Source of the DNA: Bugula neritina
Lineage: Eukaryota; Animalia; Bryozoa
Assembly: GCA_964035545.1 (NCBI GenBank)
Contig: OZ037765.1
Coordinates: forward strand, 34,409,504 to 34,473,503
Length of the DNA stretch: 64,000 nucleotides
Reading direction: 5' to 3'
How positions within the stretch are numbered: the first letter of the stretch is position 1; the number at the start of each line of letters is the position of its first letter. The notes under the pieces were generated by a model. It was not told the origin of the DNA and searched no databases. It was given only the letters and a program-made list of their open reading frames with translations. Below are positions 479 to 41,025 of the stretch, piece after piece. A program made the position numbers and the translations under genes.

Positions 479-3400
479 ATGGGTCAACGTAAATCTCTAC
501 TTCGACCCAGACCTCCACCTCAAACTCCACCTAGACCTCCACCTACACCTCCAGCTCCACTTCCATTTCGACCTCCACTTAGTAAATCTCTACCTCAAGC
601 TACGCCTCCACTTTCTGGTCAGTCTGTGTCAAGTTAGTAAATTATATAAATACAAGTACTTCAACTGCTAACTACAGAAATTTCATACTTTTTTTTATGT
701 GTTATGACATTAAGGTGCAGTAGTGGAGAAGTTGAGGTAGCCTAAGTTCTTTATTGTTCTTAATAAATTATACGTTGAGGTGCAGGTTTATATTCTCACC
801 AGAACATAACTTGTCTCTTACATTTCTTCACTACAGTTTCATTACTTTGCACCTAGCTCTGTGTTGACCATATCTGAGTATTATATTGCTTTTGTTTATT
901 ATGTGATGTTATATACCTGCTTATATTATATACTATAACTATTATACTATAACAGTATAACTATTATACTATAACTATTATACTATAACTATTATACTAT
1001 AACTATTATATTATAACTATTATACTATAACTATTATACTATAACTATTATACTGACTTATATCATATTATATTATATTACATTATATTATATTATATTA
1101 TATTATATTTTATTATATTATATTATATTATATTATAGTGGTGGTCACCTTTCACTGCCGTGTGGCCGGATCAAATCATATTATATTATAGTATAGTATG
1201 TTGTTTTATTATACTGACTTATATTATATTATATAACAAATATTATGCTGACCTATACTATAAAGTGTTATTATTATTTTATGTTATATTGTAGCTATTA
1301 TACTAACCTACATCATGTTATGTTACAATAATTATAGTAACCTTAGTTAACTGTTATATAACATGCACATTTTACTTACCTATATTACATTATATTACAT
1401 TATATTAAATTATTATATATTATTATACTATAAAATATACTGTACAGAGGTATAAACAACATGGCTACCCTTTCAACTGTCAGAATATATCACAGGATGC
1501 ATTTTGAAGTTATAAAATATCCAAGTTTACTTCAATACTGTTTATAGTGTTGAGACACTCTGTTATTTGATATCAAAGTTATTATTTATAAAATGGTGAA
1601 TATTTTGTAGAGAAGTACAAGGTGTGGTTCAACACATCCAGTATAGATGGAGCTGGTTATGGGTGGATGAAGAATGATACTACATCCTACACTATAGAAG
1701 ATATCAATGATATAAGTAGACATCATACAGTGACTCATGTTATACTGGAGAATGACATTCCTCCAAATATCAACAAACTGTTTCCTCATCTCACACATCT
1801 GAGGGTATATGGAGTATACAGCAATGCTGACTGGACCAGGTATTATGTTGTTATAATTTATAACTATATTCATAAGTGAGATATTATCTTGTAGTAGAAT
1901 GTGGAGTAATCTCCCTTCACAATAACACTAGCTTTAGTAACAACTTTTGTATTATTTACCTTATTTATTGTATTTCTATTTATGTTTCAATTTAAAGCAA
2001 GCCAATATGTGATGATTATATATAAGTAAATACTGTCATACCTGTATGTTATGTTACAGCTTATCTTCACTGAAGAATCTTGAGGTGTTGGATATATCAG
2101 AGAATAACCTATCTGAAGGTCTACCTGACAATATATTCATATCCTTACTATCATTGAGAAAGTTGAACATGAAGAGCTGTGAACTGTCAACTCTACCAAA
2201 CAGGTGTGTATTATATTATAGTGTAGAATGATACCAGAATAAATACAATATATAAATATATTATTGAATAATTGTGTAGAAGCTTCTAATATTTTGTGAT
2301 GTACAAAAATTGACTTGTATCAACTAATTACATTATATAAATCATTATACATAATATATGTGATGTCATGTCTTTACTATTCTATTCTATCAGATGTACT
2401 CAGTAAGACATGGTGTGACAACTTGGAACTTTTTACTCTGATAAATATTGGTATATAAAGTTGCTATAATATTATGAAATGCTCATAAGTGACCTCTTAT
2501 GATATTGTTGAGTAGAATGTACAGTATATAGTTCAATTACCTTTCATAATTTTCTACCTGTATGTTATGTTACAGCATATCTTCACTGAAGAATCTTGAG
2601 GTATTGGATATATCAGGGAATTACCTATCTGAAGGTTTACCTGACAATATATTCACATCCTTACTATCATTGAGAGAGTTGAACATGAGTTGGTGTAGAC
2701 TGTCAACTCTACCAAACAGGTGTGTATTATATTATGGTGTAAAAAGATACCAGAATAAATACAATATATAAATATAATATTGAATAATTGTGTAGAAGCT
2801 TCTAATCATTTGTGATGTACATAAATTGACTTGTATCAACTAATTACATTATATAAATCATTATACATAATATATGTGATGTCATGTCTTTACTATTCTA
2901 TTCTATCAGATGTAAGACATGGTGTGACAACTTGGAACTTTATACTCTGATAAATATTGGTATATAAAGTTGCTATAATATTATGAAATGCTCATAAGTG
3001 ACCTCTTATGATATTGTTGAGTAGAATGTACAGTATATATAGTTCAATTACCTTTCATGATTTTCTACCTGTATGTTATGGTACAGCATATCTTCACTGA
3101 AGAACCTTGAGGTATTGAATATATCAGGGAATAACCTATCTGAAGGTCTACCTGACAATATATTCACATCCTTACTATCATTGAGAGAGTTGTACATGAG
3201 TTGGTGTGAACTGTCAACTCTACCAAACAGGTGTGTATTATATCATACATTATGAAGTTATCTGCACTATCTTTATTGAGTCAACTAGACTCTGTGTATA
3301 TTATACATCACAAGTCAATTATTGTATTCTATTCTATTAGATGTACTCAGATAGAAATGGTGTAATAACTTCTCACTTACTCCTCTAATAAATTATTTTG

Positions 3401-6400
3401 CTGTGTAGCAGTTTATATTGGCACCAGGTATAAAATTTGTTATAGTATAAAATTATATCCATATAAGTTAGATCCTCTCTTGTAGCTGAGTGTAATGTGA
3501 AGCTGTTATACATTTCTCTTTCTCTTTGAAATAACCCGAGCCTAGTAGCAACTGCTGTATTATTTATCTGGCTCTTAGTGGTCAGATCAAGAGTTAAATA
3601 AAACTAAATTATTCTTATTCAATAATAATACTTTTATATAGTAAGTCAACTTACTACCTTTTCGTTATGTTACAGCATATCTTCACTGAAGAATCTTGAG
3701 GTATTGAATATATCATGGAATAACCTATCTGAAGGTCTACCTGACAATATATTCACATCCTTACTATCATTGAGAGAGTTGAGCATGGGTTACTGTAAAC
3801 TGTCAACTCTACCAAACAGGTGTGTATTATATTATAGTGTAAAATGATACTGTAAAAAACATAATATATATAAACACAAGGTGAATATATTTGTGTAGAA
3901 ACTTATGACGTAATATTTTACCATAATTAGAGTGACTTATAATATTATAATTATGTCTATTATGAGATATATTACAGTATTATACTGAGATATATTATAA
4001 TGTTATACTGAGATATATTATAATGTTGTACTGCGATATATTATAATGTTATACTGAGATATATTATAATGTTATACTGGGATATATTATAGTATTATAC
4101 TGAGATATACTATAGTATTATACTGAGATATAATATAATATTATACTGAGATATATTATAATGTTATACTGAGGTATATTATAATGTTATACTGAGATAT
4201 ATTATAATACTATACTGAGATATATTATAATGTTATACTGAGATGTATTATAATGTTATACTGAGGTATATTATAATGTTATACTGAGATATATTATAAT
4301 GTTATACTGAGATGTATTATAATGTTATACTGAGGTATATTATAATGTTATACTGAGATATATCATAATGGCAGTCAGTTACTGTGTGATGCATTGTATC
4401 ATTTACCTGCTCCAACTTGCATCAAATACCTGGGAGTATAACTCCTAACAGCTATAAAATCTATACAAAAAGCTATAAATATTATAGCAGAATCCTAAAT
4501 ATTCATTATAATGGTAATCGAGAGCATTTTATATATTCATTATAATGGTATATATTAGAGAGTATATTATAGAATTATATTATTTATTCTCATACCAAAA
4601 CAGTATTTGTATTTCTCTCAGCATACAGAGTCTACAGAGGTTAGAGAAACTGGACATATCATCAAATAAGTTCACCAGTTTACCATCTCCTGTGTACACA
4701 CTGAGTAGTCTGCAGAAGCTGGATATATCATCCAACTACTCCCTGACATCCTTAGATCCTGAGATACTACAGCTAACTCAACTTCGTACACTGGATGTTA
4801 GATATTGTAAAGCTCTCACCTCTCCTCCACAAGAAATATGTAAGAGAGGAGTAGATGCTGTGAGACAATACTACACAGATTTGGCTAAAGGTGCTGGTAG
4901 AAGTCTACCATTTGCTACTATAGCTGTGCTGGGTAATACTATGGCTGGGAAGACCAGTCTAATCAGAACATTACAGAATGCTGACAGAAAGAGAGTTCTG
5001 ACCAACAGAGGGCCAGATGCTGTGAGAGATGAGACAACAAAGGTGTTTAATGTTGAAGAAGTGGAGGTGGATGGTACAGTTCTCCGTGTCATAGATATGG
5101 GAGGCCAGGAGGTCTACCATATTACCTATCAACTGACACTGAGACAGAATTGCATTCCAGTCATAGTAGTCAACATGGAGCAGTATGAGGAGATTTCAAG
5201 TGAATCAACACACAGAGAAGCTTTTAGAAGATTAGCCTTTAATTACATGTCTCACCTCTATCTGGCTAACCCAACTCTGGGTGCTCCAAAACTTATCTTC
5301 ACACATAAAGATAAGTTTCAAAGTACAGAATTTCAGAAGCTTCAAAAGATTTTCCTTGAGACATCCGATCAACTGTGTGAGGAGATGATTAAAGAAGAGA
5401 AAGCATTGGGTGGAGAATTTGCTCAAATCAAACATTTCAGTGAATCAACTGAAGGAGTCTTTCTTGATGAGGACATTTATGAGGTGGGGAAAGATGATAA
5501 GTATGAAGTGTTTGACCTGATCAAGTTGTCTCTTCTTCAAAGCAGTCACCATTTTGTGAAACCTTTACCTTTGGTTTGGGAGGAAGTAAATGAAAAAGTG
5601 CTGTCTATCCCCTCTGTGTACAGCACCTTTGATGAGATACTGAAATACGTGCAAACCGAACTTCGACAAATTGAGTCAAGTCAGCTGGATATAATCCTCA
5701 CATACATGCATGACTGCGGCAAAGTCTTGTGGTATAAAAATATCAGCTCTCTCCGGCCATACATATTCCACAAAATTTCACAAGTCACCAAACTTCTCTG
5801 TGTCTTGTATCATCATGATGCTAACATATGGCAGAGTAGAGTTGACAAGTTCCAGCCATATTTTTCAGAGGATGGGATGCCTGTTGAAAAAGAAGACTTT
5901 GAAAGATTTGTTAATCATTTCACTGAGACTGGTTTGATGGTGCAATGCCTTCTCACTCATCTGGTTAAACAAGAAACACCATTTACTAGTCTGGAAGATG
6001 TAAAAGTTGCTGTTTGCTTGCTCCTCACATTCCGTTTGTTATATGGTCCTTTACCTGGTGATTTCAAGGAGCCCTGTTTTATTGTTCCTCAGTTTGCCAA
6101 CGACCTCTTTGATGCCACTTACTTTTCGCCAAAAAATATGCTTCTTCGAGTTGAAACCCAATTCAATGGCTTAGCGCTACCGCAATATGTCTACCAGCAG
6201 ATGAATGTTGGTTTGCTAGAGTTGTTTTCCGACGAATTTGCTGTGATTAAAGTGAAGAAAAATGGCGCCAATGTCTATCAAGATGGAATCTACACACAGT
6301 TGGTACACGACTACAAATCTAGAAAAGTGTCACTCCACGTGTCATCTAATGCTGCCAACATCAGCAGAATGTGGGAGAGACTCATCACCACCAACAACAA

Positions 6401-9189
6401 TATCCTTAGACATGTTCTACAAACTTGGACAGCGAGTAGACCAGTCACTACATGCTACTGTGCTCACTGTCTTCTGCTAGGACTGCCTTGTCCTAACAAA
6501 GTGCTCAATCCTCCGTGGTGTCTTCGCTCCTTGAAACATTCTACACCAACAAGTCCCAGACTGTGCAGCGGATCTTCAACAACCCTGTGTGGTGATGAGG
6601 AGATACCCAGTGCTCTTCTCTATCCATGTACGTGTAATTTTATTTCAAAAAATAGTTGATTTCTCTGTTGTTTATTTATCAACTTCTATTATTGGAATAA
6701 TTTTTCTGGTAACTGACAGTTTTTCATTCTCCAGGCAGTCCTCTCTCTCCAGAAGAAGCTGATAACATAAAAGAATGTGTCAACAAACTGAGATCTGCAA
6801 GAGAAGAGACTGCTTCAACTGTTTCTGGTATGATCGGTTTTCTATCATAAACTGTTACTGTTAGAAGTAACATTCTTTGCCTGAGCTCAGTCATATGTAA
6901 ACAGCAAAGGACAAGAACTCATGACCCTTAGTTATATAGGCTCTCTGCAAAAGCTCACACACCTTCAATTGTTTTAATTTATTTGTATAATTATTGACAG
7001 AAAAACACTCAAGTATTGATTCTGTTCATTTTTTATAGTCTTTTTGATACTTAGTTTCTGTTACTTAGCACTGAATATATCACCTTTTGTTTTCTTTTAG
7101 AGATAGGTGGAGAAAAGAATTTGTTAACTCAAACTACCTCAGTCCTTGTTGAAAACGACAACATCAGTGAATGCTCTGATATAGAAGAAGAAGGATATGC
7201 TGATTTCACTAAAGATGACCTTGAACCTTTTATATCTCAGGTTGAGGGTATGCAGCTGAAACCTACCAACAATGAACCAGTGAAACAGCTGTTTGACAAC
7301 CACAAACAGGTAAAACAAGTTTTTCGATTTCTTTTTAGATCATTGATTAATATTTTTTTGATATTATGGCTCTTCATCTAATTTCTATTACATTTCATAC
7401 TTGATTTGATTAATCCATTTTCTGTTGTCTACTTTTAGTAATATAAAATTGATTGGTTTGCAGGTTTATAAGATGAGTGACCCTGTTAGAGGTCGTGTCA
7501 TGATCATAAACATTGAGAGATTCTTTAGAGATGATGGCAGTGAACTGACTGAGGCAACCCGAGATGGTTCATACATCGACTATGTTAACATCAAAACTCT
7601 GTTGAAAGACATGGGATTTGTTGTAGCCAATGAAGATGATCCTCTGTTTGACCTGAGTAAACAGGTTACTGTATCATTTTCTTATCTTTTCCTGTAGTTT
7701 ATCCTCCCCAGGCTGTAGCTAGCGGTGATATATAGCAAGTATTTTTACTGCAGAACGGAGGCATTGCATTCCAACAAATCTACAATAATATGTTGTTAAC
7801 TTGTATTCAGGTTGTTTGTTTTTCTCAGTTCTGAGTTTTAGTTTAGAAACAGCAGCACTACTTAATAGTTTATCTTTGTGATAAATATTTCAATATAACT
7901 TTGAAGCAGCTTTGGCTTTGGCGTAGACACATTTACTTATTCAAACTTGTTTTTACACACCATTATATACTTTTATTTTACCAGGAGCTATTATCAGAAG
8001 TGAGGAAGGAGACCACCCACAGAGACCACAAAAATCTTGGCATGTTCATTCTAGTCATCATGTCACATGGAACTTCTGGAAACATCTTCTATGACAAATA
8101 CTGTAAATCTGTCAACTTGTCAGAAGTCAAAGATTTACTCTCAGCTAGTAACTTTCCTGCTATGAGAGGAAAACCCAAACTCATCATCTTCCATGCCTGT
8201 TCTGGCAGTGAGTAATGCAGAGTTGTTCCTCATTTTACTAGAACTAGCAGTTATATTACATAATTCCCTATAACTATAACATCAATTTAAGGAATCATTA
8301 TTTTCAAGATACCTGATGTTATTGGAGTATGCCTATGTGGAAGTGAGCTACACCTCATAACTGGAATCCAATAAACAGTGCTGTGTAATAGAGTTCTGCT
8401 TGTGAATCCAGTCCTAACTTATTACTCACCATCATACCACAGAGTCTACATCTTATGTATTTTATATACAGGCAGAGCTGACTTTGGTAATGCTGCACAG
8501 ACACAAAGCCCAGACACCGTCTCACCACCAACACCAACCCCTCTAACCTCATCTTCTGCAACAGCTGGGAGTGAGTCTTCTGCAGGTCAACATGTGTCTC
8601 CAAATATTCACTTTGATAGATTCACTCACCTAGATGCTGATGACTTCTACATTGTGAAGCCAAGTACAGAAAGTTAGTGAGAAGAAAATTATATTTGAGT
8701 CGACTGAAACTTTTATTTGTGCAAATTAAGATATTTGTTGCATGTAAATAAAATTGTTGCAAATTTTAAATATAAAATAATTTACATCATAATCTGAGAT
8801 TCATATTTAACTACTCAATTTCATGTGTTGCAGCTTACAAGGCTGGTAGGAATGAGAATTATGGTACCTGGTTTATCAGAATACTGGTGGCTACATTCTA
8901 CAGACACAGCTGTCACAGAGATGTTAGTGAGCTGTTTAGGATAGTAAGTACTTCAGTATTACTCTTTGTATGATACTGTGGAGCGTATTGAGTCATCAGC
9001 TTTATATTTCGCTTATATTTATACTTACAGATACAAGACAGAGTTAGACGAGTCAGTATTGCATATTGTAAGAAGACAGGAGATGAAGCAGCTGGTGGTA
9101 ATGTACCTAATTGTCAGGAATGTACTTTCACTCACCTCAGAAAACTTTTCTTTTTTCCAAAGTTTCATGGCAGACAACTCCCACAGTGA
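479..9189 (+). CDS. LRR-Roc-COR (Roco/MFHAS1-like GTPase) fused to a C-terminal caspase (peptidase C14A); 14 coding exons, ~1381 aa
   Basis: Exons: 479-617, 1611-1839, 2060-2203, 2576-2719, 3087-3230, 3676-3819, 4622-6627, 6735-6827, 7101-7309, 7464-7664, 7985-8207, 8472-8672, 8834-8943, 9031-9189. All introns are GT-AG with compatible phases; total 4146 nt, no internal stop. Motifs: LRRs (LKNLEVLDISxNxL); Roco hinge PPQEICKRGVDAVRQY; P-loop GNTMAGKTS; G3 DMGGQ; G4 THKD; COR LTYMHDCGKVLWY. Caspase large subunit YKMSDPVRGRVMIINIERF, RDGSYID, IMSHG, GKPKLIIFHACSG; small subunit GTWFIRIL and LRKLFFFP. The start codon is the least certain element. Confidence 0.88.
928..1137. repeat. Intronic AT-rich minisatellites: (ATACTATAACTATT)n followed by (ATTAT)n
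   Basis: Directly visible tandem units in intron 1 of the Roco-caspase gene. Confidence 0.85.
2030..3850 (+). repeat. Tandem array of four LRR exon+intron units (exon-start spacing 516, 511, 589 bp)
   Basis: Four near-identical 144-nt phase-2/phase-2 exons, each encoding two LRRs. The introns after exons 1 and 2 are almost identical; the third is more diverged. Confidence 0.95.
3960..4370. repeat. ~24-bp minisatellite (TTATACTGAGATATATTATAATG-like)
   Basis: Tandem units in the intron between the LRR exon array and the large Roc-COR exon. Confidence 0.85.
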
Positions 9190-17200: not shown

Positions 17201-20200
17201 AAATGTGGCTATTGTAATTATTAAGTAATTTGCTTAGTAATTAACAATAAGTTATCATTTTTAAAAGCAGACGACATTTTAGCAAACAGTCTTTTTCTAC
17301 TTCTCAGATTGATCTTTTGTTTTTCCATGGTCTTATTGCCTTGAGATCGATCTGAGTTCAAGCTCTACAGACCGACCAGCTCAGAATGACTGAGATCGAT
17401 CTTTGACGTCTTTCCATGGAAAGACGTCAAAGATCTATCTCAGCGAGATCGATCTGAGATCGACACATGGAAAGCCGGTGATTAGCTTCCCTTCTTATTA
17501 TCACTTGTATGTAATTACCTTTGTGGTTGGCTACACTTCTTTCTATTGCTTTGTACTAATAATTTTGTGATATATATACTCTTTCAAAAGGCTTTTTGTT
17601 ATGATTAGGTAAGTTGTATTAAGTGAATCTTCCACATCAAAGAGTTTCGGTGAAGCTATCACAGGGATTCAGCTGAAACTCAGTATGGGTCATTTTACTT
17701 AATTTAGTACACACTGAAATCTCCAGTTTTTAGCTATTTTTCAATATTTAGCTGGTAATGAACATGGCTTTTTGCCTAAAACTAGTAAAACACCAATAAA
17801 TACACCGAAACAATTAAGGTTCTTCTTAGTTTTACTTGATTTCTCATGTTTTTGCTTATTCATTTAGCTTATTAGGAGTTCAGACTATTAAGAAAACCGT
17901 AACAGTCTGCAACCGAAAGTAGCTGAATAATTAGGAAGAAACATGGGAAATGAAGCAAAATTAAAAAGAACTTGGCTTATTTAGGTGTATATATTGGTGT
18001 TTTGCTAGTTTTGACCAAAAACCCATGTTCATTAGCAGTTAAATCGTGAAAAATAACTAAAAACTGAAGATATATAGTGTGTACTAAATTAAGTAAAATG
18101 ACCAGTATGGTAAATGTGTGAAAAAGAGTACCGAGTTTCAGTTAATTTCACTTGTCGGAGCACCCGTTATAGTTTTACTAAAACTTGCTTAAATCATATT
18201 GATGCAGAAGCTCACTTTTACCTCATTCACACTTGCTGTACCTTAATGTAAAATATCAGCCATTTTTAATGTTTCTGGGCTAATGTTTTCAAAGTCCGAT
18301 ATTGGGTTCGATCTATGCAACTTCATTGGACAATTAATCCCAATGAGTTGATGCAAAAGTTGTTTTGTCCAATAGGAGCCCACCACAACTTGTTTGAATC
18401 AAGGCTTTTTTTAGTAGGTCGTCTGGTCGGCAGAGTAATAACTTATCATCTAGCTCTGCAAGGATTTTTATTTCTCTTAGACTCTTATTCTCGGGTCAGT
18501 TGGTCAAGTTATTACAAAACAAAAGTTTAGCCGGGTGCCTTCTACAATGCAAAGGCAATTTTCAAGGGTTTCTCTCAACCAAATTGACTTTTTGACTATA
18601 AGTGGCTAAGGTATAAACTCACCTTATGTAAGTTTATGTAACAAGAGCTTTTACTGATAGTTCTAACACTTTATGTCTACTTATTACTAAACACATGATG
18701 CCCCTTAAGAGGGGAAAGAGCTGAGTCTATCTAATCTATGGTTTATACTGCACAGGTTCCTTCTCTCTTCTCCCCCATTGATCAATACTACATCCTCAGT
18801 GTCTGTTGCTAGGTGACGATGTGTTGGTAGGTGATGATGTGTTGTTAGGTGATAATGTGTTGCCAGGTGATGGTGCGTTGTTAGGTGATGATGTGTTGTT
18901 GGGTGATGATGTGTTGCTAGGTGACGGTGCGTTGCTAGGTGACGGTATGTTGCTAGGTGATGATGTGTTGCCAGGTGATGGTGTGTTGCTAGGTGATATA
19001 TTACATTTGTGTTTATATTTCAGAGAGACCCTTCTGAGCAAAGACATAACAGATGTGTATGCTGTAGAAGCTGTTAGGAGGATGGACTTTGACCATGTGC
19101 TGGTTCGTTTATATTACGTCATATACTTACTATATTACGTCATATACTTACTATATTACCTCATATACTCACTATATTACATCATATACTCACTATATTA
19201 CATCATATACTCACTATATTACATCATATACTCACTATATTACGTCATATACTTACTATATTACATTATATACTTACTATATTACATCATATACTCACTA
19301 TATTACCTCATATACTTACTATATCACATCATATACTCACTATATTACGTCATATACTTACTATATTACATCATATACTCACTATATTACGTCATATACT
19401 CACTATATTACGTCATATACTCACTATATTACGTCATATACTCACTATGTTACGTCATATACTTACTATATTACATCATATACTCACTATATTACATCAT
19501 ATACTTACTATATTACCTCATATACTCACTATATTACGTCATATACTCACTATATTACGTCATATACTCATTATATTACGTCATATACTTACTATATTAC
19601 ATCATATACTTACTATATTACATCATATACTTACTATATTACATCATATACTCACTATATTACGTCATATACTCACTATATTACGTCATATATTCACTAT
19701 ATTACGTCATATACTCACTGTATTACGTCATATACTTACTATATTACGTCATATACTCACTATATTACGTCATATACTCACTGTATTACGTCATATACTT
19801 ACTATATTACGTCATATACTCACTATATTACGTCATATACTTACTATATTACGTCATATACTTACTATATTACATCATATACTCACTATGTTACGTCATA
19901 TACTCACTATATTACGTCATATACTCACTATATTACGTCATATACTTACTATATTACGTCATATATTACCACATATAATACATGCAGGTTCTACTGAAAC
20001 ATCTTAACACCCTGCTATCAGATGTGAGAATACCGGATGCTGATTGGATACTGGATGGTGAGAGGATGTGCCGGTGGTGTACCGTCATTCTGGATGCTCA
20101 CTCAACTCAACTCATTCTCTCTAATCAGGCGCAACTTCTGGTCAGCTTGCACGAGAACATCAGACGGCAGGTGAATATCTACCTATAGTATTGTTACGGT

Positions 20201-25087: not shown

Positions 25088-28000
25088 ATGACGTACCGTA
25101 CTGTTACTCTGGGTTTTGGGGCCTTTTTCACCGTGGCAGCATTTGTATGCTTGCTAGTGGCGCTGTGCACCAACCAGTGGGTCATCATTCAAGTGGACAG
25201 GTCAGCTGATTCTACGCTGCAGATAGGCTCAACCAGTGCTGCCACTCTTGCTGCCTTCACCAGATACAGAGGCATCTTCAAGGAGTGCTATGATGACAAA
25301 GAGGCCACCAAACCTTGTATGTATGACGTCATATTTGCTATTTTACAATTTCAAGTTATGGGTTTTAACGACAAGCTAGTTGAGGGACTGTGAGTCTATT
25401 TCTACAGAGTGTCTCTAATGAGGTAGGTCCAGTAATGGAGGAATTAGGGAACCCTTTGCTTTAGATAAAAAGTGTAGCAAAAGAAAAGACGTCAACAAAA
25501 ATTCCTGAAGAAAACAAAATACACTTGGGCTAGTTATTGATAATTCTCCATTACTGCACCTAAATGTAAAAATAGTAAAATTACAAGCCAGGAATCAAGT
25601 TTACATGATGCCTCTAAAGTCATTCAGTTCCTGCCTTTACCGTCTCTGTGCCAATAGTGATAAAAAGTGACCAAGTTTTATGGCAGTTCAAGAGTGGGAG
25701 GGGCCTTGTTTAGTGGCGATAGAATCTGGCATTATGCCAATATTCAATGTTGCATCAGTTTTCATTAAAGGCAATTACATACAGTTTTGCTGCTGTTACT
25801 GTTTCCTGTTGGGCGGCCATTTCATAATTAATACAAAGAGAATGACTTTTATACGTTGTAGACGTGAGAGCCAACGACTTTAAAGATGACCTGAATGAAT
25901 GTATATTCAATGACTTCATGGTGAACCGTAGAGTTTCTGTCAACTACACCAGCAACTACAAGACTAGAACAAGTAAACTCTACACTTATACTGTATACGC
26001 ATTGTTTTATTGATATAACCTCACTTAAGACTTCATATCATTAAATATGGCCTTGCAAAGCCTCTTCACTACATACTGTGTCACTCCAGTCAGTCGTCTA
26101 CTATTCACTACATACTGTGTCACTTCAGTCAGTCATCTACTATTCACTACAAGTACATACTGTGTCACTTCAGTCAGTCATCTACTCTTCACTACATACT
26201 GTGTCACTACAGTCAGTTGTCTACTATTCACTACATACTGTGTCACTTCAGTCAGTCAGTCGTCTACTATTCACTACATACTGTGTCACTTCAGTCAGTC
26301 GTCTACTATATATTCACTACATACCGTGTCACTTCAGTCAGTTATCTAATATTCAAGCCGATAGTTCTGAATCCTTCTACTACAATAAACACTGTTTTCT
26401 AACCAATAAAAAGCTGATTTTATGCTTAACATAGTTTTATGTAGAAAAGAAGTATTAATTATTCTCCCATCATTTTACTTCTCAATGTAATAACACTTAT
26501 TCATGAAATAGCAGACCATGTTATATTGGAATCCTAGCTTACCAATCAAGTACATTACCGGGCAGCAAACACCCTGACCTACTGAGTCATACACTGAGTC
26601 AGCACACTGAGTCATACACTGAGTCAGCACACGCTGACACATGACTATTATATTGTAGACCTGCTCATAGCTATGGTGGTGTTCATCTGTCTAGCTCTAC
26701 TCCTCTGTGTCATCGGCTTTATCGTCTTCTGCTACAGCGTCATGCTCAACGAGACTGTCATGACCAGGAAATGGAGTCTCGCGACAAAGTGGGCGGGCAT
26801 TCTCTTATTCACCGCAGGTAGTGTTCTTATCACTAGACAGAGTGCGAGCATAGTATGTGAAGGGCGGACAACCTCGCGTTTGCAGTGTATAGTGCTCCAG
26901 TGTAATATGCTTTCATAAAACTTCTTAAAACTCAGCAATAAATTTGTCGAGTTCATTCAAATCAGGTTAAGCTTACGAGGAATATGATTTGCACTGCTAT
27001 GAATAACATCCCACAATTCTCATTCACCTAACAAATTAGTTGTGGTTATTATATTTAAACTGGTTACTTGCGATTGAAATGATTCTTTTGAGAATGACTG
27101 ATGCTTATAGTTTGTTTGCTGCTTACTTGTTCGTTTGTTTGTAGCATTTAGCACAGCGTTGGGGATGGCTTTCTATCACGGAGCAGAGTACATGGAGACA
27201 GAAGTTATCGATACGGACGGGAATGACGCCCCCTACCCTCTCTTCTTTACTAAAACTCAGCCATCTGTACGTATTACATAGACTCAGCTCTCTGTATGTA
27301 TTACATAGACTCAGCTCTCTGTATGTATTACATAGACTCAGCTCTGTGTATGTATTACATAGACTCAGCTCTCTGTATGTATTACATAGCCCCAGCTCTC
27401 TGTATATATTACATAGACTTAGCTCTCTGTATGTATTACATAGACTCAGCTCTCTGTATGTATTACATAGACTCAGCTCTCTGTATGTATTACATAGACT
27501 CAGCTCTCTGTATGTATTACATAGACTCAGCTCTCTGTATGTATTACATAGACTCAGCTCTCTGTATGTATTACATAGACTCAGCTCTCTGTATATATTA
27601 CATAGACTTAGCTCTCTGTATGTATTACATAGACTCAGCTCTCTGTATGTATTACATATACTCAGCTCTCTGTATGTATTACATAGACTCAGCTCTCTGT
27701 ATGTATTACATAGACTCAGCTCTCTGTATGTATTACATAGACTCAGCTCTCTGTATGTATTACATAGACTCAGCTCTCTGTATGTATTACATAGACTCAG
27801 CTCTCTGTATGTATTACATAGACTCAGCTCTGTGTATGTATTACATAGACTCAGCTCTCTGTATGTATTACATAGCCCCAGCTCTCTGTATGTATTACAT
27901 AGACTCAGCTCTCTGTATGTATTACATAGACTCAGCTCTCTGTATGTATTACATAGACTCAACTCTCTGTATGTATTATTCACCTATATTATATAGTTGG

Positions 28001-28908
28001 CTTAATAGTCGCTCTTGAATATCTGTACAAAGTGACTTGATTCTTAGAACCAAGCTGTGACTATTTGGTAACACTGTGACTATTTGGTAGCATTGAAACT
28101 GTTTAGTGACACTGTTCCACACATAAAGACAATGTTATAGAGTTACAATCTCGTCTACAGGCACTACAGAATGCAACTACTAGGAGCTACTCTTGGTCCT
28201 ACGCCCTCGGCTGGCTGTCGGTCTTCTTTGAACTATTAGCTGCTCTCCTGCTTTTCCTCTGCGCCGTTTGCTGCGTGCCATCTGTTGGTGCGGGAGATAA
28301 AGACTTCTTCGACATCAACACCCTCAACTCCACCAAAAGTAAGCTCTTTGGTACATTATTGTTGGTCTTACAGAAACTAATGGGTAACACAGACAGTGTT
28401 TTGTGTAACTATATATAGTGCATAAATGTAGTTAAAGCAAACGCCTCGACACAACTTTAATATGAACATGTATAATATAATTTTGAAATTTAATAAATAT
28501 TGCTGTCTACCAGTCTCACTGGATTTTAATCTGTAATCACTTTGAAAACCCTGCAACATGTTGAGCTGTGAGAGAAGCGATATTTAATATACAGTGTCGT
28601 AAGATTACTTGCTCCATGGTGGGATATTTGAGGCTAGACTTGGGGACTTTCAGTAGCACTCTGATACACAATATTATAATAGTGAGAGTTACTCTGCAGG
28701 TCAGGGCCAAAGAAACATGGCATACGAGTACGTGGAGAGGAAAACTCCAATGGTGTTTGAAGCGCAACCACACATGATGAGTGACGGCTCCTACCACGAC
28801 CACTTCCGAGGCAGACACTACGACCCGTATAGCAGAGCTCCTGTGCAGCAGGAGGGGCGGGTGCAGGCCCAGTACAACTACGAGCAGGGCGGCTGGAGCT
28901 GGCAGTGA
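25088..28908 (+). CDS. Claudin/PMP22/EMP-superfamily tetraspan membrane protein (6 exons)
   Basis: Approximate exons 25088-25317, 25862-25972, 26659-26817, 27145-27266, 28161-28349, 28700-28908, with compatible phases. TM1 followed by ALCTNQW; RGIFKEC (W...GLW..C signature) and a second ECL1 Cys; YSWSYALGW before TM4. Confidence 0.82.
26060..26345. repeat. 39-bp intronic minisatellite (TTCACTACATACTGTGTCACTTCAGTCAGTCGTCTACTA)
   Basis: About 7 visible units. Confidence 0.85.
27256..27978. repeat. 24-bp minisatellite (CTCAGCTCTCTGTATGTATTACATAGA-like) x ~30 whose unit spans an exon end and donor site
   Basis: The first unit is the real junction CTCAGCCATCT|GTACGTATTACATAGA. Confidence 0.9.
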
Positions 28909-32639: not shown

Positions 32640-33752
32640 TTACTACTTACTTCGATACTTCGACTTTAGCACACGCTAGATCACCATAAGGCGCAAGAGG
32701 CGTGCCTCAGCAGCTTGTTACAATACATTTGACATAGAATTATAACTGTATTTGCATACATTATGCATTTTAAATTTGGCAATTGTAGTACCTTTCAGGT
32801 TATCATTTATCAAGTATTTGGGGAGTTCCAATTCTTAGGTCTCTAATAGTGCGCGGTAGGAAGCTGTTATGATATGCTGTGCACATGGCAGATATCGCAG
32901 TTAGAGGCAGCCCTCGTGGTAACGGTAGCGGTTGATTTGTCCCTTGTCAGTTCAGTGTAGCTGGAAGATAATGCCTGATGACATTCTTCTTTGGACAGGA
33001 TCTTCAAAAGGAGGGTTATTCGTAGGCTTTTGCGACGATCTTCCAGTGATGATATATTGAGTTGTTCTCTTGCATCACTGATGCTAGCCTCCCGGCCTTT
33101 GAGACAGCAGATGAATCTAATAGCTCGGTTCTGGACTAACTCAATTTCTTTCACAAGTTGCTTTGTTACAGGATCCCAAGTGGTTGCAGCGTATTCTAGT
33201 ATAGGTCTGCAGAGAGTCATATATGCCAGCAGCTTTGCTTTCTTGGGAGCTCCATAGAGGGATAGCTTTAGCATGCCAAGAACCTTGTATGCTTTGTTTA
33301 TTTTCTTAGTTATGTGGCTGTGAAACTTGAGGTTAGATTGTAGTGTAACTCCAAGGTGGGTAATCTCATCTACGTAGGGCAATGTTTCTCCCCCTAGTCG
33401 ATATGATGGTAGAATTTGGGGATCTTTGCCAAATGACATGATTCGGCATTTTGAGGAGTTGAACGGCATCTTCCACTTCAGAGACCAATTCTCAATCTGT
33501 TCAATATTCTTTTGGAATTTTCGAACATCATCTAGGGAGTCCACCTCTTGAAAAATCAGTGTGTCATCAGCAAATAAACTGACACTGCAACTTAGTAGAT
33601 CAGGGAGATCATTGATGTAAAGAAGGAATAGGGTGGGCCCCAGGACAGAGCCCTGTGGAACGCCAGAAAAGACTGGTAATCTACCAGAAGAGTGGCCATC
33701 TATGATTACTTGCTGCTCTCGATTTGTCAAAAAATTCTGGAGCCATATATTA
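32640..33752 (-). mobile_element. 5'-truncated non-LTR retrotransposon (CR1/L2-like LINE): C-terminal half of reverse transcriptase plus 3' UTR
   Basis: WLQNFLTNREQ...SGVPQGSVLGPTLFLLYINDL...LFADDT...W.MPFNSSKC...LGV...RPILEYA..W. The terminal HNSFLPRTIRDL motif continues in another frame (frameshift near 32880). Simple-repeat tail near 32640. Confidence 0.9.
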
Positions 33753-37300: not shown

Positions 37301-40300
37301 TGATACATACTATATGGCGTAGTAATACATACTATATGGCGTAGTAATGCATACTGTATGGCGTAGTAATGCATACTGTATGGCGTAGTAATACCTACTG
37401 TGTGGCGTAGTAATACCTACTGTATGGCGTAGTAATACATACTATATGGCGTAGTAATACATGCTGTATGGCGTAGTAATACATACTGTATGGCGGAGTA
37501 ATACACGTTGCAGGGGTCAACCAGCCCTGCCCCTAGTCAGGCTGAGAGTGGACCACTCAGGCGGCTACGAGACATTCAATGCGGTGCAGTTTGGTCAGCA
37601 GTTTGTCGGCCGTGTCGCCAACCCCAAGGACATCGTTTTGTTCACGAAGAAGCGGCAGGCAAGACAGAGGGGAGACATCCTCAATTTGGACGACGTGGAG
37701 GCCCTGGTGTCGGAGCAGAGTCACGAAACTATTGAGTCTCTCGTAAACAGGTTCCTCGGCTCTGTTGAAGAGAGGTGCGTCCCTTTAATTCTTGGGCTAA
37801 CTTTAAGATCTGAATCTAAACAGTGTTCAGCTGTATGAGTCAAGGTGAATAGACGGAGTGTTTTGGTTGTCGGCTGGGAAATCATCTGAAGTTATGTTCA
37901 AAGTGTTGGGGAGATCCTAAATATTATTGTGAAGCTGAATTTAATGGCGATGTGTAGTTGTGCTCTTTCTCTAGCATCTATTGGCATGGCGAAAGTCAAA
38001 TGAAGGTTTCATTATTTGCTAGGAATAAAATTTTTCCAAATAATTTTTTTCCTGAAAGTTGATAATACAGTTAGTAGAAAGACTACATGAAGGTGATGTA
38101 GGGTGTATGGCTTTTGACTGTTAACTGCTGATTTTATTGTATTTACTGATATCCGTGAAACTTTGAAAGTTCTGCCATCTTACTGGTCGCGTGTTTGTTG
38201 TATCAGAGGATCTCTGAAGCTGGACGCGCTGAGTGAGAGGGGACTAAGTAAAGCTGTCGGGGAGTTCGTCAAGAAAGATGATAATGAGGCTATACATGCC
38301 ATGGTGAACCACCAGATTAGCAGCATCAACACCTCCCTAAACTCTGTATGTTCCCTAAACTCTGTATGTTCCCTAAACTCTGTATGTTCCCTCAACTCTG
38401 TATATTCCCTTAACTCTGTATGTTCCCTTAACCCTGTATGTTTCCTCTCTCTACTCTCTATATTCCCTCTCTCTACTCTCTATATTCTCTCTCTCCACTC
38501 TCTATATTCTCTCTCTACTCTCTATATTCTCTCTCTCTACTCTCTATATTCTCTCTCTCTACTCTCTATATTCTCTCTCTACTCTCTATATTCCCTCTCT
38601 CTACTCTCTATATTCTCTCTCTCTACTCTCTATATTCCCTCTCTACTCTCTATATTCTCTCTCTCTACTCTCTATATTCTCTCTCTCTACTCTCTATATT
38701 CTCTCTCTACTCTCTATATTCCCTCTCTCTACTCTCTATATTTCCTCTCTCTACTCTGTCTACTAGTATACTATGTATTATGTTATAGTAATATACACTG
38801 ATATTACTTGTAGAAGAATATTGGGAGAGACGCGGAGATTTCCGAGCATCTGGAAGGACTGAAAGTGGAGAGGACAACTCTCGACCCACGAGAAGAAGAC
38901 CAGCAGGTATACTATGAGATATAATTCTACTAAATGCTGACACAGAGTATACACTGCGTGTTTCTACGTGCTGTAGGGTGTGGCTAATCATAAGGTTGGA
39001 GTGTGTTTGGTGTTGGATCTTTGTTTTGTTGAGCAAATCTTTAGTCATGAAGTTTTTTTGGAAATCTCAGCATTTTCTTCTCACCTGACACTCTACTTTA
39101 CTTGTAGAGAGATTTGATTTGCCAATTCTAGCCTAAGTTTTAGTCTGTAAGATGTAGGAAACTGTAGGAGAGTAAACTGTGTACTGAAAGCCTTATTTAA
39201 TATTAAGTGATATGTCTACGTATTGAGTGCCGAGTAGACTCAGTCTCAAGCCCTGTACTGAGTAGCAGATGACTTGTGTGTAGTTTGAGAGAGTGTTGGA
39301 AGAGAGCCAGAAGTCCCGCACGTATGTCCCTCCCCCCGACCTAGACGATGACCCTGACACTGTGGAACCAGTGCCGAGTAAGCCGGCGAGGGGAAGGGGT
39401 AGTCGGGGTGGACAGAGAGGCCGAGGTCGTGGTGGCAGAGCAAGTCGTGGAGCTCGGGCTAAAAGTGAGTCACACTCTCCAGTTTCTGTAACAGCTATTT
39501 TATTTTCAATCTTTTTTTTCAACTGTTTTTTTATTGATCTTTTAGTTATTTTTTCTCATTTATAGAAATATTTTGAAATATAAATAGACAACATACTCAA
39601 ATATGCAATGGAAAGTTCAGGGTGCATTTGGTACTGAAGTAACACAACGTCTCACTTGGCTAATTCGTGTGAGAAGTTCTCTCTGTGGAATTACTTTCTC
39701 GGTCAGATACTAAAGCTACAGTCTTTGCAAGATACTGATAAATAACTCACTCACTCACTAACTCACTCACTCACTAACTCACTCACTCACTAACTCACTA
39801 GCACTAACTCACTAGCACTAACTCACTAGCACTAACTCACTAGCACTAACTCACTAGCACTAACTCACTAGCACTAACTCACTAGCACTAACTCACTAGC
39901 ACTAACTCACTAGCACTAACTCACTAGCACTAACTCACTAGCACTAACTCACTAGCACTAACTCACTAGCACTAACTCACTAGCACTAACTCACTAGCAC
40001 TAACTCACTAGCACTAACTCACTAGCACTAACTCACTAGCACTAACTCACTAGCACTAACTCACTAGCACTAACTCACTAGCACTAACTCACTAGCACTA
40101 ACTCACTAGCACTAACTCACTAGCACTAACTCACTAGCACTAACTCACTAGCACTAACTCACTAGCACTAACTCACTAGCACTAACTCACTAGCACTAAC
40201 TCACTAGCACTAACTCACTAGCACTAACTCACTAGCACTAACTCACTAGCACTAACTCACTAGCACTAACTCACTAGCACTAACTCACTAGCACTAACTC

Positions 40301-41025
40301 ACTAGCACTAACTCACTAGCACTAACTCACTAGCACTAACTCACTAGCACTAACTCACTAGCACTAACTCACTAGCACTAACTCACTAGCACTAACTCAC
40401 TAGCACTAACTCACTAGCACTAACTCACTAGCACTAACTCACTAGCACTAACTCACTAGCACTAACTCACTAGCACTAACTCACTAGCACTAACTCACTA
40501 GTACTAACTCACTAGCACTAACTCACTAGCACTAACTCACTAGTACTAACTCACTAGCACTAACTCACTAGTACTAACTCACTCACTCACTAACTAACTC
40601 ACTCACAGTAACACTACTCACTCATAATTTCACAGACAATAGTTTTGGCCTTCATATCACGAACTTACAGGACTTCTTGACATCATCAGCCATTAACTTA
40701 TCTAGAGTTAGAGTTATAGTTGGCGGTTACATTCTATGAGTACTTATTTATTAGTTGATATTTAGTGTCTGCAGGTTACATAATAATATGGCTGTATTTC
40801 CTGTATTCTCACTCTCCTTCTAACTGCACAGGCTCTGCGTCCAATGGAAATCTGCTGGTTGATGTTACCAACAGTGACGGTGAAGATGTGCTCGTGGTGA
40901 AAGCAACTCCTCCGCCATCTGGGAAACTGTCCACCAAACTTCCTGCTAAACGATATAAAGGCATTCAAGATGATTCTGACGACGACGATTATCTTCCGGG
41001 AAAGAAATCGTGTGCTCGTCGATGA
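34386..41025 (+). CDS. MRE11: Double-strand break repair nuclease MRE11 (~10 exons)
   Basis: Phosphoesterase motifs [58 protein letters not shown]; LPLVRLRVD; [15 protein letters not shown]; GAR motif [16 protein letters not shown]; acidic C-terminus. The last exons are less certain. Confidence 0.96.
35528..36086. repeat. 55-bp minisatellite x10 containing the MRE11 3' splice site and the first ~19 nt of the exon
   Basis: CCCTCCCTTTAG|GTATGGGTAAC with AG ending at 35570, 35627, 35682, 35737, 35792, 35847, 35902, 35957, 36012 and 36067; only the last copy leads into the open exon. Confidence 0.93.
36615..36785. repeat. Intronic minisatellite (CTGTGTCACACTCTTTCATA-like)
   Basis: Visible 10/20-bp periodicity. 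Confidence 0.8.
37260..37505. repeat. 22-bp minisatellite (TATGGCGTAGTAATACATACTG) in an MRE11 intron
   Basis: About 11 units ending just before the acceptor at ~37513. Confidence 0.88.
38333..38760. repeat. 18-bp donor-spanning repeat (TCCCTAAACTCT|GTATGT) grading into a CT-rich minisatellite
   Basis: The first unit is the MRE11 exon/intron junction at 38345/38346. Confidence 0.88.
39745..40606. repeat. Highly homogeneous 14-bp satellite (ACTAACTCACTAGC) x ~56
   Basis: Near-perfect tandem array in the last MRE11 intron. Confidence 0.95.

Follow-up and report, generated by a model that had tools for sequence, protein, structure and literature searches.

The window analysed here, a stretch of 64,000 nucleotides from the genome of the cheilostome bryozoan Bugula neritina, contains four repeated exons which we read, with a probability of about three in four, as germline two-LRR cassettes making up most of the ligand-binding arm of one gene within a large, clustered LRR-Roc-COR-caspase family. 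The ligand-facing residues at the x positions of the LxxLxLxxNxL motif, whose rate of change is four to seven times that of silent sites, suggest inherited immune-type receptors, and the family might sense pathogens, symbionts or allogeneic cells. Diversifying LRR surfaces encoded by cassettes typify recognition receptors, among them VLRs, plant NLRs and brown-alga ROCOs, and the same cassette design is seen here in an animal, where the ROCO GTPase is joined to a caspase in about 100 genes. These proteins are candidates for a sensor, a switch and an executioner united in one chain. Our literature search found no description of this bryozoan LRR-Roc-COR-caspase family; its members would offer concrete candidates for allorecognition or symbiont control in this group. 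They would also represent a natural experiment in which exon symmetry, exchange between paralogs and selection hold a framework while the binding face diversifies.

Cassette exons and gene architecture

The features of the gene are listed in Table 1. As an earlier note on this DNA had described, the four cassettes are exons of exactly 144 nt in phase 2 on both sides, each frame comprising one nucleotide, 47 codons and two nucleotides. All four are bordered by AG and GT (with ..TTACAG or GTACAG upstream and GTGTGTATTATA downstream), and acceptor and donor contexts are equally strong across them. A serine codon (AG/C) is re-formed at every cassette junction, and the flanking junctions follow the same pattern, with AG closing exon 0 at 1839 and C opening the large exon at 4622. 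Given the shared phase and this junction codon, any number of cassettes stays in frame, so that copies could indeed be skipped, lost or duplicated without a frameshift. Each cassette encodes two 24-residue LRRs, L-x-x-L-x-(I/M)-x-x-N-x-L ... LPDNIF followed by L-x-x-L-x-M-x-x-C-x-L ... LPN, which are tandem units of the typical 24-residue class (LxxLxLxxNxL, then xxLPxxxF). Pfam LRR_1 is matched at 26.3 bits (cut-off 20.6), LRR_8 and LRR_4 are slightly under their cut-offs for one 47-residue cassette exon alone, and the best PDB match is an LRRTM chain (E 6e-16), with VLR chains and VLR-derived repebodies lower.

Table 1. Features of the LRR-Roc-COR-caspase gene in the window (positions within the 64,000-nt stretch).
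Feature	Position	Strand	Remarks
First coding exon, MGQRKS... then proline-rich stretch (ACCTCC repeats)	479..617	+	ORF and sequence reading
Exon 0, N-terminal cap ahead of the LRR cassettes	1611..1839	+	ends AG, phase 2
LRR cassette exon 1	2060..2203	+	144 nt, two LRRs; the most divergent cassette, 12-14 differences from the rest
Intron 1	2204..2575	+	97.3% identity with intron 2
LRR cassette exon 2	2576..2719	+	144 nt; LRR Pfam matches for the cassette type
Intron 2	2720..3086	+	recent duplicate of intron 1
LRR cassette exon 3	3087..3230	+	144 nt
LRR cassette exon 4	3676..3819	+	144 nt
23-nt minisatellite, 17.7 copies, family D8	3963..4370	.	within intron 4
Large exon: three more LRRs, Roc GTPase, putative COR region	4622..6659	+	open frame runs to 6659
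Two caspase-domain exons	7425..8215	+	within ORFs 7425-7697 and 7901-8215; Pfam and motifs

The cassettes of the window are each distinct and lie 5-10% apart in pairwise comparisons. They vary at 20 nucleotide columns. At three of these (codons 6, 9 and 21) the change is synonymous, the earlier note having counted about three, and the other 17, falling in 10 codons, are nonsynonymous. Fifteen of these 17 columns are located at x positions of LxxLxLxxNxL, within eight codons (11, 14, 16, 34, 36, 38, 39 and 41), and the residue patterns quoted earlier proved exact; the remaining two nonsynonymous codons (1 and 27) vary in cassette 1 alone. Five codons (14, 36, 38, 39 and 41) carry changes of more than one base, also reported previously. 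Cassette 3 differs from cassette 2 by seven changes, five of them nonsynonymous (all at x positions) and two synonymous. The near identity of neighbouring introns claimed by the earlier note stands for introns 1 and 2 (355 of 365 aligned bases match, with two indels) but not for introns 3 and 4, which match the other introns at just 78-82% and with many gaps.

The first coding exon ends in phase 1 with a donor GT at 618, and splicing to exon 0 keeps the frame by completing a Glu codon (g + ag); in RNA-like contigs, ACCTCC-repeat sequence stands directly before exon 0 (loose end at 1609). Exon 0 is present upstream of the cassette arrays in 13 paralogs, with dN equal to or above dS in five of six comparisons, and a Pfam search with it gave no match. 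Within the large exon LRR_4 and LRR_8 were matched and, as in ROCO proteins, a Roc GTPase domain (PF08477, 31.4 bits, cut-off 27) covers residues 100-192 and includes the P-loop GNTMAGKTS; PDB matches over the LRR-Roc part comprise the Roco of C. tepidum, LRRK1 and LRRK2. COR-A (PF16095) reached 14.9 bits at residues 318-382, under the cut-off of 35.3, and the more distant relatives P0033-P0035 and P0042 carry precomputed COR-A matches. The caspase exons match Peptidase_C14 (PF00656) at 42.3 and 18.8 bits (cut-off 21.4), and the catalytic His and Cys motifs (SHG and ACSG) can be read in ORF 7901-8215. The domain and structure searches were run exon by exon, and no signal sequence is discernible in the predicted protein. 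These matches predict an LRR-Roc-COR-caspase architecture for the gene, with COR-A of this protein staying below the Pfam threshold.

Family-wide diversity at the x positions

In the 216-Mb Bugula neritina genome we found 192 cassette candidates, of which the 40 scored were all full length with at least 92% identity, and 113 candidates for the Roc-COR exon, 69 of the 75 scored being without a stop. By these counts the family would comprise at least 75 LRR-Roc-COR-caspase genes, roughly 100, and it is tandemly clustered at 33.8-35.1 Mb of C1 and 2.5-6.3 Mb of C6. We recovered 82 distinct, intact, full-length and open cassettes, all AG..GT flanked, from about 320 kb of genome read, so the family statistics use 82 of at least 192 cassettes. 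Fifty-two of them come from loci picked for their similarity to exon 2, while the 30 of a fully read 200-kb block and the four of the window were sampled without similarity bias. Cassette number is not fixed across paralogs, ranging from 2 to 9. Similar arrays also exist in independently assembled metagenome and Logan contigs and, since the copies are distinct, open, full length and flanked by AG..GT, the array is neither a chance pattern nor the assembly artefact that the earlier note had considered.

Tests of selection were carried out over the 82 cassettes on 12 x codons fixed beforehand, at which omega was 3-7. The NG86 method gave a dN of 0.346 versus a dS of 0.126 (exon-wide dS 0.074), parsimony counted 290.5 nonsynonymous versus 19.5 synonymous changes (binomial p 3e-8) and maximum likelihood estimated an omega of 7.3 (LRT 68, p 1e-16). 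The trees behind the change counts were built from 144 nt and recombination violates their assumptions, a problem that pairwise-diversity and flank-matched tests escape. Among cassette pairs whose flanks are homologous (19 independent ones), replacement divergence at the x sites reached 20.9%, compared to 4.7% in introns and 3.6% at synonymous sites (Fisher p 1e-36), that is, 4.5 times the flanking intron rate and 5.8 times the synonymous one. Within the window, cassettes 2 and 3 differ at 5 of 30 x replacement sites versus 10 of 365 intron sites (Fisher p 0.003). Family-wide pairwise diversity is four times higher at x replacement sites than at silent sites (0.277 vs 0.070). Amino-acid entropy across the 82 cassettes is 1.1-3.4 bits at the same eight x codons that vary in the window and 0.8-1.0 bits at codons 5, 13, 18 and 43, the others being mostly near-invariant (0-0.6 bits). 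Judged from these substitution patterns, the x positions evolve under diversifying selection, as had been proposed, and the diversified ones are x5, x8 and x10 of the first LRR together with x3, x5, x7, x8 and x10 of the second. A Watersipora LRR region (P0039:36-240), folded without an alignment and at low confidence (mean pLDDT 60.8), weakly suggests that the variable positions are located in and just after the predicted strands.

It is highly improbable that these positions are merely unconstrained or a mutational hot spot, with a conserved solenoid scaffold whose surface residues have been relaxed. Substitutions are generally tolerated at exposed sites of LRR solenoids, and synonymous changes in x codons run at about 1.5 times the rate of the other codons, but a local silent rise of this size falls short of explaining the excess, and both the flank-matched ratios and the ML omega argue against it. 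Relaxation alone cannot lift a replacement rate above the neutral rate. Stop codons or lost splice sites were found in none of the 82 cassettes, and a pseudogene or relaxed-constraint reading was discarded, all copies being intact and the x replacement rate being above the intron and silent rates. On a homogenised framework, eight solvent-exposed positions per cassette change several times faster than silent and intron sites, so that nearly every cassette bears a unique surface.

Probable germline exchange and the question of cassette choice

In the same paralog pairs, dS is 0.01-0.07 (0.014-0.068) for the cassettes versus 0.26-0.39 for Roc-COR. Synonymous constraint was discarded as a cause of the low cassette values, since synonymous and intron rates are equal in flank-matched pairs. 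The intron flanks are mosaic among paralogs: those of cassette 1 are nearest to the flanks of the first cassette in the C1:34510035 paralog, those of cassette 4 most resemble the flanks of the last cassettes in two paralogs (C1:34323036 and C1:34394906), and the upstream and downstream flanks of cassette 3 come from different intron lineages. The large exon shows a similar break against the paralog at 34.51 Mb, with 93% identity over the first 204 residues and just 83% in Roc-COR. The PHI test within the cassette exon gave no distance-dependent recombination signal, and we therefore infer exchange solely from the dS contrasts and the intron mosaics. The presence of 2-9 cassettes, the mosaic flanks, a cassette dS far below that of Roc-COR and the x-site excess point to germline duplication, exchange between paralogs and diversifying selection as the forces shaping the cassettes, in agreement with the gain, loss and shuffling of exons suggested at the outset. 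Unequal crossing-over and tandem duplication can change cassette number with the frame intact and have done so repeatedly, as the range among paralogs shows, and 5' gene halves were probably exchanged or turned over between paralogs, given that silent sites of the cassettes and the 5' half are far more alike than those of Roc-COR.

A related possibility is that neighbouring cassettes owe most of their differences to ready-made imports by short gene-conversion patches, older variation being shuffled rather than new mutations selected. The mosaic flanks and the low cassette dS fit such an import, as do the multi-base codon differences clustered at codons 36-41, and the frameworks are so nearly identical family-wide that conversion would alter only hypervariable codons. 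We consider it unlikely, however, as there are 75 different LRR2 hypervariable haplotypes among the 82 cassettes, the shared ones occurring at most three times, and at least one shared haplotype belongs to cassettes with near-identical intron flanks between paralogs. The negative PHI result also counts against it, and the ratio of x to silent diversity is unaffected by recombination. Conversion would in any case alter only the route, diversity being kept by selection either way.

Cassettes of the family are spliced head to tail: in the RNA-like runs X1 and X3, introns have near zero depth, exons are covered and cassette ends are joined to cassette starts. These runs consist of short Logan contigs onto which paralogs of at least 95% identity map together, and no locus-specific transcript was seen in them, so that they speak for the family rather than for expression of this gene or constitutive inclusion of its four cassettes. 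In one contig of the RNA runs, exon 0 is followed at its end by a cassette beginning with CATATC, unlike cassette 1 in this gene. The joint rests on about 25 + 23 bases; in the paralog at C1:34932444 the final 25 bases of exon 0 are identical, and of 20 other sampled arrays 19 have a first cassette starting with CATATC (CATGTC in the remaining one). Paralogs explain the joint as well as skipping of cassette 1 would, and it was attributed to them. A joint from a DNA run (1997 to 3665) has just 20 bases on its shorter side.

We give a low probability to a choice of cassettes per transcript or cell, in which exon skipping or somatic rearrangement would yield many variants from one gene, as has been proposed for brown-alga ROCO genes. 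Every subset of cassettes would be in frame, and alternative use of LRR exons is reported for ROCO genes of Ectocarpus (PMC11378527). On the other hand, the only candidate joint, which at face value would favour such a choice, is short and matched by paralogs, splice contexts are equally strong in the four cassettes, and a family member of Watersipora has three RefSeq isoforms, which vary in the post-COR linker and the caspase but share their LRRs; alternative splicing, named by the earlier note as a possible source of the repertoire, thus finds no backing here. All 30 cassettes of the 200-kb block are inside arrays of six family genes. Exon 0 and the Roc-COR exon are recognisable on either side of five of these arrays, and no exon 0 was found for the sixth. 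Including the window, 34 of 34 cassettes are within family-gene arrays (six of seven bracketed), and the 264 kb fully read hold no bank of orphan donor cassettes. An identical 5-cassette array is carried by two metagenome samples. That the cassettes are combinatorial, through regulated exon choice or somatic rearrangement of the array, so that a colony or its cells express many receptors, is very unlikely; if true, a lophotrochozoan would possess an anticipatory repertoire with direct coupling to a death protease. In the germline reading that we prefer, each gene would encode one fixed recognition surface, coupled via the Roc-COR switch to the caspase effector, and the repertoire would reside in the roughly 100 germline genes rather than in a choice made by each cell.

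Relation to known receptor systems and relatives

The comparison with brown-alga ROCO genes drawn earlier is apt. LRR-ROCO genes of Ectocarpus and Saccharina (Zambounis et al., 2012, PMC3341825; Teng et al., 2024, PMC11378527) share the N-terminal LRRs before Roc-COR, the repeated symmetric phase-2 exons in numbers variable between genes, positive selection at concave-face positions of these exons, as found here, and membership in a large family proposed as immune receptors. Their LRR exons, as given in PMC11378527, are of 72 bp and phase 2 with one LRR each, whereas in the bryozoan the phase is the same and each exon holds two LRRs (144 nt, or 141 nt in Watersipora). The bryozoan genes differ also in their animal host, their tandem clusters and their C-terminal caspase domain, and alternative splicing of LRR exons is reported in the algae, while here the one candidate joint is explained by paralogs.

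Lamprey and hagfish VLRs possess cassette-like 24-residue LRR modules of the same sequence class, with hypervariability restricted to the beta-strand face. VLR genes are assembled somatically from intronless donor cassettes by a gene-conversion-like process, and their products are secreted or membrane-bound. In contrast, the bryozoan cassettes are normal exons, spliced as parts of germline genes that are complete and have Roc-COR-caspase attached, and the incomplete gene and donor bank lacking splice sites that define somatic assembly were not found in the DNA read. Fungal NLRs with highly internally conserved repeats (HET-E/HET-D type; PMC12222747, PMC13449251) likewise combine near-identical tandem repeats with few hypervariable, positively selected positions, repeat-number variation and exchange between paralogs. 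They are also linked to cell death and allorecognition, a link that the bryozoan family may share. The fungal repeats are WD40, ANK or TPR in one exon of NACHT or NB-ARC NTPases, whereas here LRR pairs are in separate exons and the switch is a Roc-COR GTPase. The predicted LRR-Roc-COR core is shared with MFHAS1/MASL1 and LRRK-type animal ROCO proteins. MFHAS1 and the LRRKs are single- or few-copy and have no hypervariable LRRs, MFHAS1 being without a C-terminal enzyme and the LRRKs having a kinase; the bryozoan family differs from them in its caspase, its size and its hypervariable LRRs.

Metagenome and Logan contigs L051-L061 hold paralogs, none allelic to the genes read (no match of at least 90% over 400 nt); two of them, L058 and L059, are 99.99% identical and may come from one individual. 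Scans of metagenome contigs with the protein and with a 24-sequence alignment gave nothing related, or relatives at 22% only. The nearest named protein is the 'malignant fibrous histiocytoma-amplified sequence 1 homolog' of Watersipora subatra (34% identity), a species which shares the layout of one exon per two LRRs with the AG/C junction, as 141-nt exons.

Gene organization and the cassette exons

The gene under study runs from a proline-rich exon through exon 0 (the N-terminal cap), four LRR cassettes and a large exon to two caspase exons. Each of the four cassettes is exactly 144 nt long, with a pyrimidine-rich tract ending in (T/G)TACAG before it and GTGTGTATTATA after it, and is read as 1 nt, 47 codons and 2 nt. 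The AG at the 3' end of a cassette forms a Ser codon with the C of the next exon at every junction, and, since exon 0 also ends in AG and the large exon starts with C, any number of cassettes remains in frame. Borders and frame agree with the four exact 144-nt phase-2 LRR exons described in the earlier note. Every cassette encodes two 24-residue LRRs, the first (LRR1) with the pattern ..L-K-N-L-E-V-L-x-I-S-x-N-x-L-S-E-G-L-P-D-N-I-F.. and the second (LRR2) with ..L-R-x-L-x-M-x-x-C-x-L-S-T-L-P-N.

Coordinates of the features in the window
Feature	Position	Strand	Description
First coding exon	479-617	+	ATG at 479; MGQRKS, then proline-rich stretch encoded by ACCTCC repeats
Exon 0	1611-1839	+	N-terminal cap
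LRR cassette exons 1-4	2060-2203, 2576-2719, 3087-3230, 3676-3819	+	sequence reading and script check
Large exon	4622-6659	+	LRRs and Roc-COR; at 6659 the open frame ends
Reverse-transcriptase frame	32867-33730	-	287-aa open frame
Minisatellites (examples)	18984-19900, 27112-28113, 39634-40500, 46317-47330		

Protein searches, made exon by exon, identified in the large exon three further LRRs and a Roc GTPase domain (PF08477, 31.4 bits, cut-off 27), while COR-A matches weakly and under its cut-off (14.9 bits); the LRR-Roc part of this exon also matches solved chains of C. tepidum Roco, LRRK1 and LRRK2. The caspase domain, with its SHG and ACSG motifs, lies on the two downstream exons (PF00656, 42.3 bits). 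Of the named proteins, a "malignant fibrous histiocytoma-amplified sequence 1 homolog" from the bryozoan Watersipora subatra comes closest, and LRR-Roc-COR-caspase proteins are annotated in this species. At positions 4670-8374 of the W. subatra sequence OY755164.1, each 47-residue LRR pair occupies a phase-2 exon of its own, 141 nt long and again joined at AG|C, so this layout predates the split of the two cheilostome genera. The predicted N-terminus of the window protein fits the N-myristoylation pattern MGxxxS/T.

Twenty columns vary among the four window cassettes, three of them synonymous, in line with the earlier count of about three, and 17 nonsynonymous. The latter fall in ten codons, eight of which are x positions of LxxLxLxxNxL (two motifs per cassette), with exactly the residues that had been listed; at the remaining two, codons 1 and 27, only cassette 1 differs. 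The near identity claimed for the neighbouring introns holds for introns 1 and 2 (97.3%, 10 mismatches in 365 aligned bases and two indels), whereas introns 3 and 4 match these at only 78-82%, with many gaps. Intron 4 contains a 23-nt minisatellite.

Family size and selection at the x codons

The genome searched (216,009,554 bases in 321 contigs) holds 192 candidate copies of the 144-nt exon, and all 40 that were scored are full length with at least 92% identity. For the Roc-COR part there are 113 candidates (69 of the 75 scored are without a stop), clustered on chromosome C1 at 33.8-35.1 Mb, near the end of this 35.6-Mb chromosome, and on chromosome C6 at 2.5-6.3 Mb, with smaller groups elsewhere. 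The C6 cluster is the larger one, with about 40 Roc-COR exons that are 63-67% identical to the window gene and nearly all open. In 200 kb of the C1 cluster that were fully read, six genes share the same layout of exon 0, cassettes, Roc-COR exon and caspase, although an exon 0 was recognised in only five of them. Together with the window and 30 short loci, this stretch provided 82 cassettes of 144 nt, all different, all bordered by AG..GT and none with a stop; a looser scan of the same sequence found no extra diverged 144-nt copies.

Among these 82 cassettes, amino-acid entropy reaches 1.1-3.4 bits at codons 11, 14, 16, 34, 36, 38, 39 and 41, the most variable showing 12-15 different residues each, with Y, W, N, D, S, R, E and G frequent. 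The other codons are mostly near-invariant (0-0.6 bits), with codons 5, 13, 18 and 43 at 0.8-1.0 bits. The variable codons correspond to x5, x8 and x10 of LRR1 and to x3, x5, x7, x8 and x10 of LRR2, positions that by established LRR geometry lie along the concave sheet and the ascending loop next to it. Cassettes align to solved chains of the 24-residue LRR class with the LxxLxLxxN motif in register, an LRRTM chain being the best match and VLR and VLR-derived repebody chains ranking lower. An AlphaFold single-sequence model of the homologous Watersipora LRR region, of low confidence (pLDDT 60.8), alternates a five-residue strand (x3 to x7) and a helix every 23-24 residues, as expected. The textbook pattern and this weak model support the predicted location of the hypervariable residues on the concave sheet and ascending loop.

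For the selection tests, the 12 x codons of the two motifs were chosen beforehand. Nei-Gojobori estimates over the 82 cassettes gave a dN of 0.346 versus a dS of 0.126 at these codons (whole-exon dS 0.074), and 0.048 and 0.062 at the other 35. Parsimony on a tree counted 290.5 replacement versus 19.5 silent changes at the x codons (omega 3.0-4.2, binomial p 3e-8), and codon maximum likelihood on the same tree gave an omega of 7.3 (LRT against omega = 1 of 68, p 1e-16), with about 1.2 at other codons. As short, recombining sequences make trees unreliable, we added a tree-free test on 19 non-overlapping cassette pairs whose 150-nt flanks are homologous on both sides. Intron divergence in these pairs was 4.7% (266/5668) and synonymous divergence 3.6%, not different from it (p 0.27), while replacement divergence was 3.5% at other codons and 20.9% at the x codons (Fisher p 1e-36). 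A comparison of exons 2 and 3 of the window gives differences at 5 of some 30 x replacement sites, versus 10 of 365 sites in the sister introns (p 0.003).

Relaxed constraint never raises the replacement rate above neutral, and the excess over the intron rate in the flank-matched pairs makes it very unlikely at the x codons. Diversifying selection on these codons, as the earlier note had proposed, is therefore well supported. One caveat is that differences may have been brought in from other cassettes by conversion, which would alter only hypervariable codons; however, 75 of the 82 LRR2 hypervariable haplotypes are unique, and pairwise diversity ratios are insensitive to recombination.

Turnover of cassettes among paralogs

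The genes read through have 2, 2, 2, 3, 4 (the window gene), 4, 5, 5 and 9 cassettes between their exon 0 and Roc-COR exon, a range that bears out the gain and loss of cassettes permitted by their symmetric phase, and two further paralogs have at least six and at least seven. In a tree of intron flanks, each window cassette groups with cassettes of other genes and not with its own neighbours. Cassette 3 has an upstream flank of the c2 type, matching a paralog at 34.51 Mb at 142 of 148 positions, and a downstream flank of the type found at the first cassette of two-cassette paralogs (144/148). It is evident that the intron flanks are mosaic; within the cassette exon, the PHI test gave no recombination signal. 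The window array could have arisen when a g13-like and a g11-like array exchanged unequally inside a cassette, and a later duplication of a 511-516-bp unit (intron plus cassette) would have produced introns 1 and 2. Overall, germline turnover of cassettes is well supported.

Silent divergence differs between the two halves of these genes. Between paralogs, dS in the Roc-COR exon is 0.26-0.39, with omega about 0.25, whereas for these gene pairs it is as low as 0.014-0.068 among the cassettes and 0.02-0.13 for exon 0. Because silent and intronic sites diverge at equal rates in recent pairs, silent-site constraint is ruled out as the source of the low cassette dS, and the low 5' values reflect recent shared ancestry of the 5' halves. 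Exon 0 seems to be under the same fast-evolving, homogenised regime as the cassettes, with dN at or above a very low dS in five of six paralog comparisons (e.g., 0.154 versus 0.022). The large exon is mosaic as well: its identity to the paralog at C1:34506625-34508631 is 93% over the first 204 residues and 83% in the Roc-COR part, for which the paralogs at 34.24, 34.30, 34.33 and 34.53 Mb reach 93-94%. Such a pattern suggests that a recombination breakpoint lies inside the exon.

Transcripts, related systems and genomic surroundings

Among the sequencing runs with short contigs matching the window, two are RNA-like, with exons covered and introns at or near zero depth, and two others are DNA-like; "symbiont metagenome" libraries are among the runs in which the stretch occurs. 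In RNA-like contigs the end of a cassette (..CAACTCTACCAAACAG) is followed directly by the cassette starts at 2576 and 3676, and proline-rich-exon sequence by exon 0; one paralog contig also crosses from cassette to cassette, with different hypervariable codons. These joints show that cassettes are spliced head to tail at the level of the family, the contigs (80-250 nt, with paralogs of at least 95% identity mapping together and cassette junction sequences all identical) being silent on which cassettes of the window gene are included. ACCTCC-type repeat sequence stands directly before exon 0 in RNA-like contigs, and judging from these the length of the proline-rich repeat seems to differ between paralogs. 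Position 2172 reads G for A in a DNA run and in an RNA-like run, which would turn Lys into Glu at hypervariable codon 38 of cassette 1; this is either an allele or the mapping of a paralog at 95% identity or more.

The earlier note had also suggested that alternative splicing yields a repertoire. The sole skipping-like joint connects the exon 0 end with CATATC.. (about 25 + 23 bases), where cassette 1 starts with CTTATC; it could be read as skipping of cassette 1, but paralogs that share this exon 0 end and have cassettes beginning CATATC account for it equally well. The three RefSeq isoforms of a Watersipora family member are alike in their LRRs and differ in a linker of 28 residues behind COR and in caspase truncation. 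A cassette repertoire generated by splicing or somatically is unsupported. One DNA-run contig joins intron positions 1997 and 3665 (shorter side 20 bases), which would remove cassettes 1-3 and may come from a haplotype with fewer cassettes or from a paralog.

Among described systems, the ROCO family of brown algae comes nearest, with 72-nt phase-2 exons of one LRR each, exon shuffling, alternative splicing and positive selection at four concave positions (PMC3341825; PMC11378527). Cassette logic and ROCO core are common to both, although unit size and host kingdom differ, the bryozoan family has tandem clustering and a caspase end, and its contigs give no clear case of the alternative LRR-exon splicing described in the algae. 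Fungal NLRs are similar in their highly conserved internal repeats. VLRs belong to the same LRR class but are assembled somatically from donor cassettes without splice sites, a scheme that the bryozoan cassettes, with AG..GT borders in all 82 copies read, do not fit. No account of this LRR-Roc-COR-caspase family came up in a literature search of incomplete coverage on bryozoan LRR, caspase, ROCO and allorecognition receptors. An immune or allorecognition role for the family would be a reasonable inference.

The 64-kb window contains no further cassette or Roc-COR exon. Minisatellites occupy much of the 55 kb downstream of the cassette gene and are unusually dense at 14.4-54.5 kb, with units of 8-55 nt and many with 20-58 copies. 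The 287-aa open frame matches the reverse-transcriptase domain (PF00078, E 1e-16) and represents the remnant of a retroelement that lies between family genes.
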